A stretch of 64,000 nucleotides of DNA, taken from the NCBI GenBank assembly GCA_023515725.1, contig JALDTO010000207.1, positions 68,908 to 132,907 of the forward strand, in the 5' to 3' direction. Below the pieces are notes generated by a model. That model was given only the letters and a program-made list of their open reading frames with translations. It had not been told where the DNA came from and did not search any database. The stretch comes from Amoeboaphelidium protococcarum X5. Taxonomy: Eukaryota > Fungi > Aphelidiomycota. Every line of letters begins with the position of its first letter. Within the stretch, counting starts at the first letter, position 1. Of this stretch, positions 54,494 through 61,384 are shown one piece after another. The position numbers and the translations under genes are program-made.

Positions 54494-55185
54494 TTGGAGC
54501 TGTAATCAAAAGAGTTTTAGTTTGATGTATTGTAAGGTAATATAACTCTCAACTGTGAATGGCCTTAAAATGTAACATGTTGAAAACGCATAGTCATCAA
54601 TTAGTGTGTTGCGATGCGTTTATTAATAGCACTGGAGTTCGCCAACAGCGGAGCTTGTAGCTTGTAGCTTTTGCTCAGCTCGGCTAGCTGTTTCTAATAA
54701 ACGGTATCAATTGCACGTGTATATAGTGGGAAAAAAACAAAGTAAAATAACAACACCAAGCATATAAAGAAAGAAATCATAATTTCAGCTAATTTTATGA
54801 GTGAAGCCTTTGCAAGCAGTTAAAAATACTGACCAAATAAATATACAGGGACAACAAATAATCAAATACTTTTCAAAATCAAAACGTAAAAAACATTGCA
54901 ATTTGCTTGATGCACAGGCATAACATATTGGATAGGTACCTTATTTTTGTTTAGAGAGCTGCTCTGCCAATTTATCGCCCGGCGAGACTTTTGTCGTTTC
55001 TCGAGAAGAGGCGCGACGAAAGCTTGGCAGCAGGACCTTGGAAGGAGTTGAACCCATCCGCTCTTGTAATCATATTAGAGAACCATGTCTTCCAACAACA
55101 ACAAAAAAAAACTTCTTGTTGACCTAACTTAACTTTAGATGATTATATAGAACCAAGTATGTAGTCAAAAAAGCAAAAAGAATTG

Positions 55186-55258
55186 GAGCGCCTAGTGGAT
55201 TCGAACCAATGACCTTCGGATTATGAGACCGACGCCCTAGCCGCTGGGCGAAGGCGCT
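55186..55258 (-). tRNA. tRNA-Met (CAT), elongator-like
   Basis: Cloverleaf with acceptor stem AGCGCCT/AGGCGCT, anticodon arm TCGGT-CTCATAA-TCCGA and GGTTCGAATCC B-box; downstream T-runs serve as a Pol III terminator. Confidence 0.93.
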
Positions 55259-55272
55259 GAGTAAATACTGAA

Positions 55273-55509
55273 TGTTACAGTCGTGCAGACTGATCAATGA
55301 TCTTTGCCTATTGTGGCTGAGCAACGTTCCCACGCCTCCTCAAGATTATACAATCAAGTTCTCACGATAGATGAGATCCATCTCTTTTGATCATCGTGTT
55401 AATATAGTATTCAACTTATTTACACGTTTTTACCTTGCTTGTCTGGTTAGATCCTGTATAGTCAGTCTAAGTTCCCCTGTCTAGTATATCAAGTAGTCCC
55501 GATCTAACA
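55273..55509 (+). repeat. 5' LTR
   Basis: Direct repeat of 60199-60435 with TG..CA ends. Confidence 0.97.
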
Positions 55510-55510
55510 C

Positions 55511-55520
55511 TTAACACGAT
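55511..55520 (+). other. Putative self-priming primer-binding site
   Basis: TTAACACGAT is the reverse complement of ATCGTGTTAA at 55393-55402 inside the LTR. No TGG-initiated tRNA primer site is present. Confidence 0.75.
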
Positions 55521-55531
55521 CCATAAGTATC

Positions 55532-56503
55532 ATGTCTGACTTCCGTGCCACAACACCTGAAGGTGTAAATGCCGAAATGTTGCATGCGTTGCATAATGCT
55601 CAGGTTCACAACGAGTAGTTATAACAATAGATTGCTGCATATGAAAATTAGCGTTTGTCCACTCCAGCCCAAGTTCCAGTGTCAGTAGAGTAAAATTCAG
55701 TCATCTTGCCTTCCAAGTACAATGGTGAGCGTGAACTGTTCCGTGGGTTCAGAAATTAGTTAACCATCCTGTTTAAAATCCATCCTTAAAGGTACAAGAG
55801 CGACGAGATTAAAATTATGACCGTCATATCTTTGCTGTCCGGTAATGCCTTGTAATGGGTCAATCCAATACTAGAACATCCGAGTAAATATCCAGATACT
55901 TTGGCCAATTATGACAGGTTTATGAGCGCGTTAGCTGCTGCATTCTAGCCTATTGAGCAAATGGCAATTGCTGGGAATCGAATTAAGCTATTGAAGCAAC
56001 TGAAGAAGACTGCATCTGTATACTCTACTGAATTTTTAAGTCTTGCTTCCGACTTAGATTGGAATGATTCTGCACTAATGTTCTAGTACAAGGATGGGTT
56101 ATCTTATCAGGTTAAGAAGATGTTATTAGGATACCCAGAACCAAGCAAATTGCAAGAGTTGATAGACTTATCCATCAGATGTGACTAACGTCTGTCTTTG
56201 TTTCATGCTGCAAATGGCAGAGTTGTCAATAATCAATTATTCCAGAATATCGCTAATAATCGCATTCCGTAATTTGGTCCTGCTAATAATCATCAAGTTG
56301 TTCCAGCTGCAGTTCCAGTCAACAATCCAGATGCTATGGAGATAGATCAAATTCAACGTGGTAGATTGTCGCCAGAAGAGAGAGCCCGTAGAATCGCCAA
56401 TAATTTGTGCATCGTCTGTGGTTAGACTGGTCATTGGAGACGTGACTGCCCATTAGCTGTTCGTAACCGTCCAGCGCGCCGTGCATAAGTCAATGAGCAA
56501 TGA
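55532..56503 (+). CDS. gag: Retrotransposon Gag with CCHC zinc knuckle
   Basis: LPSKYNGER, LSGNALQW, YSTEF..LDWNDSAL..YKDGL, AMEID, CIVCGQTGHWRRDC. Ends at TGA 56501-56503. Confidence 0.93.
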
Positions 56504-59500
56504 CAGTTAGTTAATGAAGATGATAATGGTATTGAAGTAATATTGAATCTGAACTCAATTTCATCTTGCAAAATTCAACTTAACAGTACAATCCTTATTG
56601 GCACATAATCAATCAAGGCTATACTTCTACTGGATTGTGGTGCTGATGTCTGTTTCGTCAGCCAGAAGTTGGTGGATACTTACAAGATTCCAGTGGTTCA
56701 ATTGAAGTAGTCCATTACTGTCAAGTTTGCCGATGGCAACGAGGATCATTGCACCAAGATTATCCATCAAACTACACCCTTATAGTTGCATATTGGTGAA
56801 CATATTGAAACGATTACCTTCCTGGTGACTTAATTGTCATAAGATATCATTCTTGGCATGTCTTGGCTGAAGCAACATAATCCGCTGATTGATTGGATCT
56901 AAGAGAAGGTAACATTTAACTCTGATTTCTGCGTTATCAACTGCGTTGTTCATGAAACTTCTGTCTATAGTAATGCTTAGTCCTCTTCTAGTGTCAGATT
57001 GGAATAAGAGTCTTTAAAATAACCTGCTCCAAAGGTCTCTTTCAATCTGAATTCTATGGTCTAATCCAATAATATAGAGATGGCAGACAGTCATCTTGCC
57101 ATCTTATCTAATGTTGATTCATCTACACAAACAGAATAATAGCTAAAAGAAATTAATTCACCTAGTTCTGCTTCTTCAGCTACTGCAGTTAAAGTTTCTA
57201 CTGAGATTCAAGTGGATGTTTCAGAAATTCAGTCGTTGGTCGAAGAAGAGAAGCGTTCCATTGTTCTGGAGATTGATGATCTTTACACTCAGATGCGTGA
57301 TATCTCTGAAGTTCCGAATAATACTGATCATGTTAATTAAGAGTTGCCAAAGTAAATAGCTGATTATTAAACTGTGTTTGACAAGAAGATGGCTGATTAA
57401 TTGCCGCCTCATCGCGCGTCTGATTGTACTATTGATTTAAAGCCTGGCCCTGAACCATTCTTTGGTAAAGTCTATAGTCTGACTAAAGAGGAAGATTTTG
57501 CCTTGAAGGAATGGTTGTAAAGTAATATTGATAAAGGTTTCATTCGTCCAAGTAAAAGTCCATTTGGTGCACCTTGTTTTTACGTGAAGAAGCCTGACTG
57601 GACTGGAGATAAGAAGTTACGTCTGTGTATGGACTATCGTGCATTAAATAAGAATACAATTAAGAATAAGAATCCAATGCCTTTAGTATCTGATATATTT
57701 AGAACGCTGCAAAAAGCTAAGATGTTTACTACTTTGGATTTGGTTGGTGCATACAATTTATTGAGAATAAAGGAAGGCCATGAATTTAAGAGTGCATTTC
57801 GAACTAAGTATGGTTCATATGAGTTTTTGGTTATGCCTTTTGGACTTGCAAATGCTCCTGCTCAGTTTCAGACTTTTATGAATGAACTGTTGAAAGACTA
57901 GATTGGAAATTTTGTCATTGTGTTCATTGATGACATTATTATCTATTCAGACAATGAAGATGAGCACTGGTAACACGTCCGTGAAGTTTTGGAGATCTTA
58001 AGATAGAATAATCTTTACTGTAATATTGCCAAGTGTCACTTTGCATAGCGAGAATGTAAGTATTTGGGTTATGTTCTTTCAAAGGATGGGTTGTCAATGG
58101 ACTTGCGTAAAGTTGAAGCTGTTTTGAAGTGGCCAAATCCAAAGAACGTGAATGAAGTGTAAATGCTGCTTGGTTTTCTTAACTTTTACAGAAGACTTAT
58201 TAAGAACTTTGCTAAATTGACCATGCCATTCACTCTGCTGCTGAAAAAAGATGTTCAATTCTGTTGGGGAGAAGAGTAGAAGGCTGCATTAGAGTAGATG
58301 AAGAAAGTTTTTGCTGATCCTCAATTTCTCATGCATCCGAATGAAGAGAAGCCATTTATTGTTGAAACTGACTCGTCTGATTTTGCCATCGCTGGTGTTT
58401 TGTCTTAATATGATGAAAATGGTGAATTGCGTCCTGTTGCGTTCTATTCTCGTCAAATGATTCCTGCTGAGCGTAATTATGAGATTTACGATAAAGAATT
58501 GCTAGCTATTCATGAATGCTTTAAAGAATGGAGACACTTTTTGTAAGGTGCTGATCATCAAGTCACTGTTTTGTCTGATCACAAGAATCTGCAATACTTT
58601 ATGGAAACAAAGTAGTTAACGCGTCGTCAAGCTCGTTGGGCTACATTCTTTGCAGAGTTCGACTTCGTTCTTACATATCGTCCTGGAAATAGAAATGGCA
58701 AAGCTGATATACTATCTAGAAGGCCCGACTATTACGTTGAAAATGATAAGGCTAATTTCTTGCGCATTATTGATCCTAATCAAGTAGTTAACGCGTTATC
58801 ATTGGCTGTTTTTGGTTCAGTTGATCAAACGGTGACTATTTAAGAAATTGAGACTGTGAATTAACTAGATTGGCCTCTTTATGTAAAGAAATGGCTAGTT
58901 TCTGGCGAATGGAAAGCAGATTTGCCTGTTGAAGTTTTGTAGTTATGCAAAGATCAAACTAAACATTTCTCTCTTGATGATTCTGGTAATCTCTGCAGAA
59001 TTGCTGATGATGGAATAACTAAAAGTTGGTATTTACATCCTTCTTCTCGTCTGGAACAATTGGAAAGACTGCATGATAAGCTTGGTCATTTGAAGAACGA
59101 CTCAATTGCTGAATTGATTAAGAGAAGATACTGGTGGCCAAAGATGGATCAAGAGATTAAAGATTACATTTCTCGTTGTGCATATTGTTAACTTGATAAG
59201 TCCTAATCTACTTCTGTGTCATCCACTCCTATTAAACCAGTTCCACCTGTTGCTTTGCCCTTTGAAAGATGGGGAATTGATTTGGTATAAGATCTGAGTG
59301 AGACTAAGTCTGGTAATAAGCACATTATTACTGCAATTGATTATGCTACACGTTGGGTCATTGCTAAAGCTGTTCCAAATAGAGATGCTAAGACTGTGGC
59401 TAATTTTATTTATCATGAGATTGTAATGAATTTTGGCGCTCCTTTTGAAATTATCAGTGATCGTGGTAGTTCTTTCTTGGATGAAGGTGTTAAATACTAT

Positions 59501-60226
59501 GAGAAGAAGTGGAACATTAAGCATCTAGCTACTTCTCCTTATCATCCTTAGACCAATGGAATGATTGAACGTATGCATGCTATGTTGCGTCATGCTATTG
59601 CTACTCTAGCTGCTGGTAATCCTTCTCGTTGGGATGAATATTTGGCAGAAGCTGTATTTGGTATTCGCGTCAGAACTCATGCAGTTACTAAGTCATCTCC
59701 ATTTTATCTCATGTTTGGAGTAAATCCAAGAATTCCTGGTGATACTCACCCACCATTGTCATCTATGAAGCCACTGGATGAATTGGAAGAGATTGAAGTA
59801 GAAGGTGCAATTATGGCTAGAACCTTCGAAGAAATGGGTAATGCTAGACGCGCTGCTTATGAACGCTCGTTGACTCAAGCTGAATTGATGCGTAAAAGAT
59901 ATAATTTGGATCATAATGCTCCTGAGTATTTCTTCAAGGTTGGTGATTGGGTGAAGTTGAAGCATTATGGCAAGAGTAAATTTGAGTTCAATTGGAAAGG
60001 CCCTTACAGTGTGGTAGATGTTGGGTTTCCTGGTACGTATTGGCTAATGACTCCGGCTGGCTTGCGTCTTGACTCTGTTGTTAATGAATCTGATTTGGCT
60101 CCTTGGCTTTAACCAACTGTTAATAATGAATCCTTCTTCTATGATGGTACTACAAGAAGAACTAATGCTTTACGTCAAGGTTTTGGAGAGGGAGATAGTG
60201 TTACAGTCGTGCAGACTGATCAATGA
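56504..60226 (+). CDS. pol: Retrotransposon Pol (PR-RT-RNase H-IN), in frame with gag after a TGA
   Basis: PR LLDCGA and ILGMSWL..NPLIDW; [21 protein letters not shown]; RH ETDSSD, DKELLAI; IN H..GH..CAYC, GIDL, SDRG, GMIER and a GPY motif. No ATG of its own at the start; the stop lies inside the 3' LTR. Confidence 0.93.
60185..60198 (+). other. Polypurine tract
   Basis: GGAGAGGGAGATAG directly precedes the 3' LTR. Confidence 0.85.
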
Positions 60227-60435
60227 TCTTTGCCTATTGTGGCTGAGCAACGTTCCCACGCCTCCTCAAGATTATACAATCAAGTTCTCACGATAGATGA
60301 GATCCATCTCTTTTGATCATCGTGTTAATATAGTATTCAACTTATTTACACGTTTTTACCTTGCTTGTCTGGTTAGATCCTGTATAGTCAGTCTAAGTTC
60401 CCCTGTCTAGTATATCAAGTAGTCCCGATCTAACA
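60199..60435 (+). repeat. 3' LTR
   Basis: Direct repeat of 55273-55509. Confidence 0.97.
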
Positions 60436-61384
60436 TGAAAACTGCTCACTATGCTAAATATATAGCAATTGAACAAAACGCTTGGTAATTTGACACTCTA
60501 AAAATGATATCTATTCTCTGCAATAGCATGTCGAGTAGGCTTGTATCATTTGAATTGAAAAAGTCTTACTTTAATTACGATCTGATCGATGAGAAACCAT
60601 TTCAGTTCAGTAATATTTTTGTGTTACGAATTCCTTTTTGGTGGCGTGTAGTCAATCTTCCGCGATTGTTGATCTATAGAAAGTTCACAATGGCTTTGAC
60701 ACAGTCCACGCAGTTCTCTTAGATGTCTAAATTAATTTTATAAGACTAGACACTTAATAAATGCCGGTGATCAACAATCGAAATAGCTTGCTAGCTGTAT
60801 CAACGCAGAACTCTCCATGAGCCTTGAAGGCGGACCCATCGCGTCATGCGAACAGACTTGCAACTACTGTGTTAGTCCAGTTTGATGGGCAGATGTGCTG
60901 GTGGTTAAATGGCTTATTGCAAAGAACACCATCTTTGTATAGGCAAAATGACTGTCCTTTTGTAAACTATTCTTCAGTTCAGATATAGTCTGTATCAGGC
61001 CCAGTTAACACCACTCTTCCTACTGCTCAGTTAGATTCTGTTGATCCGCCGTAGAAGAAGGCCAAGGTGGAAGAGGAGTTGGATCGCTTGTCTCAACCAG
61101 TTGTAAGTTGAAGAGGTACTCGTTACTGAAAGTTTCGCGAGAGAGTAGAAGCATTGATGGGCGAAGATAGAACTGTTAAGCAATTGATGTGGATTGGACA
61201 AGGGTGATCATCAACACACTCATTAACGGGGATAGTCAATGGTTGCTCCTGTTGGGTATGGCGAAAGTCAAATATATATCTAAAGATGGAGACAATAATC
61301 ACGGCTTGTTGCTTGAAAATTCTATTTAAAAGCTGCAGTTAAGTACGTAATATTATTTGCCACAATTACTAGAATATAATCAAT

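Follow-up and report, generated by a model that had tools for sequence, protein, structure and literature searches.

The tRNA-Met locus and the inserted element

The window, that is, the whole 64-kb stretch of Amoeboaphelidium protococcarum DNA analyzed here, contains a Ty3/gypsy element of 5,163 bp (55273–60435) next to tRNA-Met(CAT), the only tRNA found in the window by ARAGORN (Table 1). The B box of the tRNA gene, GGTTCGAATCC, is of the elongator type, and T5/T6 terminator runs lie just beyond the 3′ end of the gene (approximately at 55160–55184). The coding strand of the element is the forward one, so that element and tRNA gene are divergent. The two LTRs form a direct repeat with 100% identity.

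The spacer between tRNA and LTR, read in the tRNA-Met orientation, is TTCAGTATTTACTC, and we infer that it comprises the pre-tRNA leader and the start site. The first-pass annotation had described a spacer of this length, inclusive of the 4-bp target-site duplication, and a divergent element; both are exact by the ARAGORN call, the LTR repeat and the TGAA present on both sides. It had also placed a TATA-like box beyond the 3′ LTR. With the element and one copy of the duplication removed, this box occupies the region 31–40 nt upstream of mature tRNA-Met, its end being 16 nt upstream of the insertion point, and a TATA-like box ending 16–19 nt before the insertion point is found at six reconstructed sites, this one included (see below). 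The search for an empty allele, suggested at the same time, was negative: the right flank (window 60436–60900) matches only itself in the assembly.

Stop-free pieces of the element, all in one frame, match Pfam families RVT_1 (8e-16), RT_RNaseH (2e-14), Integrase_H2C2 (5e-15) and rve (2e-11). The only internal TGA (56501–56503) ends gag, and pol continues in the gag frame in the order protease–RT–RNase H–integrase, the integrase consisting of the HHCC part, the DDE core and an SH3-like C-terminal domain; pol terminates at a TGA (60224–60226) within the 3′ LTR. As the pol domain matches come in this order and the closest solved structure for the RT is that of Ty3 (4ol8, 7.8e-26), the element is assigned to Ty3/gypsy: it is an intact, recently inserted LTR retrotransposon of the Metaviridae. 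An annotated A. protococcarum protein, P0104 (MIR68_003176), is 99.2% identical to the window copy and 99.9% identical to a second copy on contig C146. The 9-mer CTTAACACG that follows the 5′ LTR (55510–55518) is common to all aphelid families described below (L031, L034, L035, L036, L039).

Table 1. Features of the tRNA-Met locus, LTR-element insertions, TATA-like runs and 5S rRNA genes (locations without a prefix are positions in the window)
Feature	Location	Strand	Description
tRNA-Met(CAU)	55185..55258	-	ARAGORN (anticodon CAT); RF00005, 56.8 bits at C206:124093-124165
Spacer, mature tRNA 5′ end to LTR	55259..55272		14 nt, 4-bp TSD included
TSD copy 1	55269..55272		TGAA (TTCA in tRNA orientation)
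5′ LTR	55273..55509	+	237 bp, TG...CA ends
PBS-like CTTAACACGATCC	55510..55522	+	immediately 3′ of 5′ LTR
gag	55532..56503	+	Ty3-type capsid and CCHC knuckle; Pfam families of P0104
pol	56504..60226	+	protease, RT, RNase H, integrase; Pfam
Integrase C-terminal tail motif (11 residues)	60125..60157	+	conserved across chromodomain-less clade
Polypurine tract GGAGAGGGAGATAG	60185..60198	+	sequence
3′ LTR	60199..60435	+	237-bp repeat
TSD copy 2	60436..60439		TGAA
TATA-like box CTATATATTT	60456..60465	-	tRNA orientation; AAATATATAG on + strand
Family A, full copy	window		tRNA-Met; 14 nt; TGAA; divergent
Family A, full copy	C146		tRNA-Gly(TCC); 35 nt; GAAT; same orientation
Family A, solo LTR	C192		tRNA-Glu(CTC); 19 nt; TTAT; same orientation
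Family A, solo LTR	C146:915169		5S rRNA, position +1; TTCA; same orientation
Family D, full copy	C154		tRNA-Pro; 13 nt
Family D, full copy	C155		tRNA-Gly(GCC); 14 nt
Family E, full copy	C158		tRNA-Gln; 21 nt
Family E, full copy	C249		tRNA-Lys; 28 nt
TATA-like run, tRNA-Met			TATATATTT
TATA-like run, tRNA-Pro			TATATA
TATA-like run, tRNA-Gly(GCC)			TAAATATAAA
TATA-like run, tRNA-Gln			ATATATT
TATA-like run, tRNA-Lys			TATATA
TATA-like run, 5S			TATTTGTA
LTR 3′ ends, family A	55483-55509, 60409-60435		
LTR 3′ end, family B	L031:7360-7387		
LTR 3′ end, family D	L035:7818-7845		
LTR 3′ end, family E	L039:2722-2749		
5S rRNA genes	C146:920905, C192:813876, C214:545244, C233:560709, C162:2661, C233:158654, C212:215280, C211:301918		

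Genetic code and host genome

The genome of A. protococcarum is compact (23.65 Mb, 346 contigs). Under the standard code the interior of the element has no long ORF, and the entire window has only four ORFs of at least 200 aa. If TAA (30 occurrences) and TAG (19 occurrences) are treated as sense codons, the frame is open from the ATG at 55532 to the TGA at 60224. The host reads UAA and UAG as glutamine. A tRNA with anticodon CUA on contig C158 (L038:1556-1629), called ‘tRNA-Pyl’ by ARAGORN, is most simply a UAG-reading glutamine tRNA. At least eight 5S rRNA genes are scattered singly over seven contigs, with no tandem array.

Insertions of family A and its sister families

An LTR search of the assembly has yielded two full copies, two solo LTRs and two unplaced fragments of the family represented in the window (family A). 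The second full copy (C146:455715-460879) is 99.6% identical to the window copy overall, and its LTRs are near-identical, differing in one 1-nt gap and no mismatches. All four independent family A insertions adjoin Pol III genes, and their target-site duplications differ. At one of these sites, the 5S gene on C146 (5S match of 90.8 bits), the end of a family D element, whose two LTRs are identical, lies 2 nt before Rfam position 1, and the TCAT duplication of this element spans positions –2 to +2; the family A solo LTR lies beyond this element and has its own duplication. As the two duplications are offset by 1 nt at the 5S start, both families target this start.

Sister families B–E, retrieved by RT searches, have RTs 72–77% identical and pol intact under the host code, and there is, in addition, a distant family F. 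Besides the full copies listed in Table 1, solo LTRs were found near tRNA-Arg (11 nt) and near tRNA-Lys genes (28 and 36 nt). LTRs are stacked upstream of tRNA-Glu in the order A, then D, then B/C-type, the newest insertion being the closest to the gene.

Genome-wide, 59 LTR matches were mapped to about 38 loci, and 20 of these adjoin a known Pol III gene (17 tRNA and three 5S genes), compared to approximately 0.006 loci expected by chance for 78 genes (63 scored tRNAs, seven further tRNAs and eight 5S genes) with 50-nt windows in 23.65 Mb. The observed number is a lower bound, with 63 of 1,171 tRNA candidates scored and 16 of the approximately 38 LTR loci uninspected. In all 20 cases the LTR is on the upstream side of the gene, with 11 in the same orientation and nine divergent. 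The distance to the mature 5′ end is 11–45 nt at the 17 tRNA genes, while three of the eight dispersed 5S genes have a D or E LTR 2–4 nt upstream. The targets include at least nine different tRNA species in addition to 5S. The converse count agrees with this: among 63 tRNA genes chosen regardless of LTRs, 12 have an LTR at most 45 nt upstream. Hence the Pol III-targeted integration suggested by the first-pass annotation for a single copy holds for all independent family A copies and for at least 20 of about 38 loci, situated 2–45 nt upstream of tRNA or 5S genes, and the random placement that mapping of further copies might have revealed is contradicted by these counts.

Random integration could nevertheless produce an excess near tRNA genes if purifying selection had spared only such copies, as gene-disrupting insertions would be purged from a compact 23.6-Mb genome. 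We consider this explanation very improbable: copies with 100% identical LTRs have left little time for selection, the sites are precise to the nucleotide (TGGA used twice at tRNA-Lys, the 1-nt offset at 5S), the insertions are exclusively upstream and none downstream, and other intergenic DNA, although equally harmless, harbors no fetched copy. The chance that a single LTR–tRNA unit has been copied around the genome by segmental duplication is negligible. Some tRNA genes are indeed duplicated with short flanks (inverted tRNA-Gly(GCC) and tRNA-Arg(ACG) pairs, paralogous tRNA-Lys leaders), but the insertions involve tRNA species too diverse for that, and 5S as well, and their duplications, flanks, orientations and LTR families all differ.

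One target site has been used repeatedly. The tRNA-Lys gene on C249 (L039:2451-8103) is accompanied by an LTR–internal–LTR–TGGA–LTR array with three identical LTRs, and the same gene in another A. protococcarum assembly (GCA_023515745.1, L058:4375-9775), by LTR–internal–LTR only; this family E locus, whose target site has been reused, is structurally polymorphic. A different arrangement is seen in L043 (C162:102200-112199), where an inverted tRNA-Arg(ACG) pair flanks a family D solo LTR and a divergent element with family F LTRs and an RT 30% identical to that of family A; there is an assembly gap inside.

Two fetched family B loci have no recognized Pol III gene beside the insertion, and these insertions are still at TCCA/TTCA sites. 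Scanning of the family B flanks and of a 110-nt repeat unit with Rfam at permissive thresholds gave only chance-level matches (U6atac, 15.5 bits; RAGATH-32, 16 bits). The flank on C207 (L031:7388-7775) contains GGTTCGAGAC and has T6 at its end, and in the flank on C13 (L046:4020-4143, minus strand) AAATATATTTT lies 15 nt upstream of TTCA. Both flanks may be unannotated Pol III genes. The repeat unit of approximately 110 nt, 83% identical between its copies, is found beside LTRs at L031:7629-7735 and L044:9179-9282; the unit includes TACTAAC as well as AATTTTCGCCGTGTGGCAAGCGG, an Sm-site-like sequence with a hairpin after it, and only one copy has a weak U6atac match. Among the 16 uninspected loci, the one at C155:642673 has a B box approximately 30 nt beyond the LTR and is probably next to a tRNA. 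A B-box pattern search yielded at least 178 listed matches, not above the reversed-pattern control, and a U6 search produced no scoring match, its controls being likewise silent. For annotators of aphelid and chytrid genomes the insertions suggest a practical rule, that piles of LTRs mark Pol III genes, unannotated ones included.

Insertion points relative to TATA-like boxes and transcription starts

Empty sites were reconstructed for six targets (Table 1) and read in the gene orientation. In these, the insertion point follows the end of a TATA-like run by 16–19 nt, whereas the interval from the insertion point to the mature RNA is between 2 and 28 nt. T(T/C)CA predominates among the duplicated bases, and in the 5S case the A of TTCA coincides with RNA position 1, which is the 5S start site. 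Two unoccupied tRNA genes have the same layout, a TATA-like run separated by 14–15 nt from TTCA. The 5S genes calibrate the start site internally; start sites at the other genes were inferred from the 5S +1 position and the TATA spacing. These sequences are most simply read as having the Pol III +1 nucleotide at the A of T(T/C)CA, in which case the elements would cut across positions –3 to +1, in agreement with the site choice of Ty3 and Tj1 (see below). Distances of 28–36 nt imply unusually long leaders or, alternatively, a precision lower than that at 5S. Moreover, tRNA genes of A. protococcarum are seen to possess upstream TATA-like boxes. Likewise, upstream TATA-like boxes are a feature of tRNA genes in Schizosaccharomyces pombe.

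The LTRs of families A, B, D and E (Table 1) themselves have a TATA-like box (GTATATC, CATATAC, TTTATAG or TATATAA) 16–20 nt from the 3′ end, and this spacing matches the one between native TATA-like boxes and insertion points. Therefore insertion in the same orientation would leave a TATA-like box as far from the Pol III start as the native one had been. No such box is present at the LTR ends of two relatives from outside A. protococcarum, L050 and L055.

Taken as a whole, the data make it highly likely that this intact, young Ty3/gypsy element, together with the rest of families A–E and the distant family F, integrates at start sites of Pol III genes. The staggered 4-bp cut falls on T(T/C)CA, 16–19 nt downstream of the end of the TATA-like box; it is 11–36 nt from the mature 5′ end at tRNA genes, on the upstream side, and at positions –3 to +2 of 5S genes. 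Both orientations are used, and later insertions stack at the same spot. In this way the element multiplies in a compact genome, sparing protein-coding genes. In the mechanism we propose, the integrase would be tethered to the Pol III pre-initiation complex.

Integration might also be directed without any protein tether, by direct recognition of a T(T/C)CA initiator or of TATA-bent DNA by the integrase. T(T/C)CA is recurrent, TTCATCCAAA is common to several sites, and the duplications in the gene orientation are TTCA (several), TCCA, CTTC, TCAT, ATTC and ATAA. However, a degenerate 4–10-mer is present thousands of times in 23.6 Mb, and the insertions are found at Pol III genes; the motif is missing at the ATAA (tRNA-Glu) and ATTC (tRNA-Gly) sites; and it belongs to the tRNA promoters themselves, as it is also present at unoccupied genes. 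We regard recognition of DNA alone as improbable.

For a tethered integrase, the site geometry suggests TFIIIB (TBP/Brf1), positioned on the TATA-like box, as the most likely partner, and we hold this assignment with about even confidence. What favors TFIIIB is that the distance from the insertion point to the TATA-like box is fixed and that to the tRNA body is not. A possible, somewhat unlikely alternative is targeting via TFIIIC or a Pol III subunit. It has precedents in DGLT-A, whose RNase H is proposed to bind Tfc4, and in Ty1, whose integrase binds AC40 (PMC6101501, PMC5911963); both TFIIIC and Pol III are recruited by tRNA and 5S genes alike; and the integrase lacks detectable similarity to the C-terminal domain and chromodomain by which Ty3 contacts TBP and Brf1. 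On the other hand, the distance from the insertion to the TATA-like box is constant, and that to the tRNA body, which bears the A and B boxes, varies from 11 to 36 nt, which fits a factor placed on the upstream DNA, as TFIIIB would be.

Integrase tail and comparison with known systems

The integrase is well conserved across families A–E. Past the SH3-like C-terminal domain (...WKGPY...DLAPWL) only 38–46 residues remain, and this tail begins with N-x-[DE/S]-[FY]-F-Y-D-G-[TS]-x-R in families A–E. An AlphaFold2 model of the family E C-terminal domain with the tail has one SH3-like barrel (pLDDT above 90), and the tail, with pLDDT of 40–60, is predicted to be disordered. The chromodomain family PF00385 is absent from P0104. 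Searches of PDB sequences with the integrase C-terminus retrieved the PFV integrase core only and no Ty3 integrase (7q5b), and a search of the ESM Atlas, generic integrase C-terminal clusters. The initial observation that no chromodomain follows the GPY/F module is thus borne out by the Pfam result, the single barrel and the short tail, and with so few residues and one barrel there is therefore no room even for a vestigial chromodomain of the Ty3 type. By analogy with the short integrase peptides of Ty1 and Ty5, we tentatively suggest that this conserved tail motif might form the tether; the FFYDG tail occupies the place of the chromodomain in related chromoviruses.

Targeting of Pol III genes is a textbook safe harbor for transposons. 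To our knowledge, its mechanism has been solved only for Ty3 and Ty1. The A. protococcarum families provide a further natural case, still active at present, in a lineage that branches deeply beside Fungi, with nucleotide-level precision and with an integrase devoid of the domain used by Ty3. The behavior is a known one, now observed in a chromodomain-less lineage, and the integrase tail may be a new variant, the FFYDG motif being a candidate peptide for a different tether.

Budding and fission yeasts, Candida, Yarrowia and Dictyostelium are known to harbor gypsy elements that target Pol III starts (PMC5911963, Table 1). Insertions of Ty3 in Saccharomyces cerevisiae lie no more than a few bp from Pol III starts, at tRNA and 5S genes and in both orientations (PMC8632968, PMC5911963), 1–4 bp from the start (PMC5911963), and Ty3 integrase binds Brf1 via a vestigial chromodomain after the C-terminal domain (PMC8632968). 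The aphelid elements are similar to Ty3 in targeting the starts of both tRNA and 5S genes (three of eight of the latter) and in using both orientations. They differ in having the predicted-disordered tail of 38–46 residues in place of a second barrel, with no detectable similarity at the integrase C-terminus, and in the gag–pol junction, which is an in-frame UGA in a host where UAR encodes glutamine, versus a frameshift in Ty3.

Tj1 of Schizosaccharomyces japonicus is approximately 5 kb long, with about 240 bp per LTR; its gag and pol share one frame and are separated by a stop codon, and its PBS is of the self-priming type (PMC4600332). Its insertions lie between the TATA box and the start, 5–11 bp from the mature tRNA on the upstream side, and also occur at 5S genes (PMC4600332); they are 1–10 bp upstream of the start (PMC4600332), in one fixed orientation and with a 5-bp duplication (PMC4600332). 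Our elements agree with Tj1 in size, LTR length, the single TGA between in-frame gag and pol, and the choice of tRNA and 5S targets; unlike Tj1, they are found in both orientations (11 same versus nine divergent) and generate 4-bp duplications. No S. japonicus proteins occur among the 120 best relatives. An origin independent of Ty3 and Tj1 is plausible, since neither of these two elements is among the 120 best relatives.

DGLT-A of Dictyostelium discoideum, also a Ty3/gypsy element of a compact genome and without a canonical chromodomain, inserts 13–33 bp upstream of mature tRNAs (PMC5911963) and is thought to bind the TFIIIC subunit Tfc4 via its RNase H (PMC6101501). Compared to DGLT-A, the site here tracks the TATA-like box, and 5S is struck at +1.

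A model for the FFYDG tail is provided by the peptide tethers of Ty1 and Ty5. In these copia-type elements, short C-terminal integrase peptides act as tethers, and Ty1 inserts across a window of approximately 1 kb, not at the start site. The peptide of Ty1 integrase tethers it to AC40 (PMC7459421). A full-text literature search, whose coverage possibly does not extend to the aphelid genome paper, returned no aphelid or chytrid element with such behavior.

Relatives outside A. protococcarum

Searches with two queries, a stop-free piece of the integrase and the polyprotein encoded by an environmental relative, identified three groups of relatives: other A. protococcarum copies, many proteins of Batrachochytrium salamandrivorans and B. 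dendrobatidis (50–60% identical), and contigs from uncultured samples. Nearly all members of these groups end with DLAPW(L/R)...FFYDGT.R, and the motif N-x-[DE]-[FY]-F-Y-D-G-T-x-R is common to families A–E and to this chromodomain-less clade. More distant matches have VFHVSLLEPY and a chromodomain (PF00385).

In a quick maximum-likelihood tree (55 rows, 1,128 columns) the chromodomain-less clade (SH-aLRT 100) is set apart from the PF00385-bearing relatives and is sister to the sampled chromoviruses. The aphelid families group together (83), and the environmental element L050 is their sister (93). Chromoviruses of fungi and plants share with this clade the domain order and the GPY/F C-terminal domain; the difference is in what follows, VFHVSLLEPY and then the chromodomain in chromoviruses, versus DLAPWL and then the FFYDG tail.

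Some of these relatives are also located near tRNA genes. The end of the L050 element is 11 nt from tRNA-Val(TAC), on the upstream side, an LTR at a locus represented in two samples (L053/L054) lies 7 nt upstream of tRNA-Asn, and the B. salamandrivorans element L055, with 96% identical LTRs, starts 2–3 nt from a tRNA-Val(AAC) that is called by ARAGORN and not listed by Rfam at the gathering score. No tRNA is present at five of six B. salamandrivorans loci, which are nested TE islands, nor at two of the environmental loci, of which four, on five contigs, are independent. Because of these loci, the FFYDG motif is not in itself sufficient evidence of targeting. Pol III targeting is probably not confined to A. 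protococcarum, and it may be older than this species. It is conceivable, if doubtful, that FFYDG-tail elements of aphelids, Batrachochytrium and uncultured organisms constitute an old lineage where a disordered peptide replaced the chromodomain as the Pol III tether, separately from Ty3 and Tj1 and before the aphelid–chytrid split.

The 5′ LTR of the B. salamandrivorans relative is followed by CTTAACAAG (L055:3920-3928). The anticodon arm of the L055 tRNA-Val(AAC) also contains the aphelid 9-mer CTTAACACG in the same sense, which is probably a coincidence.
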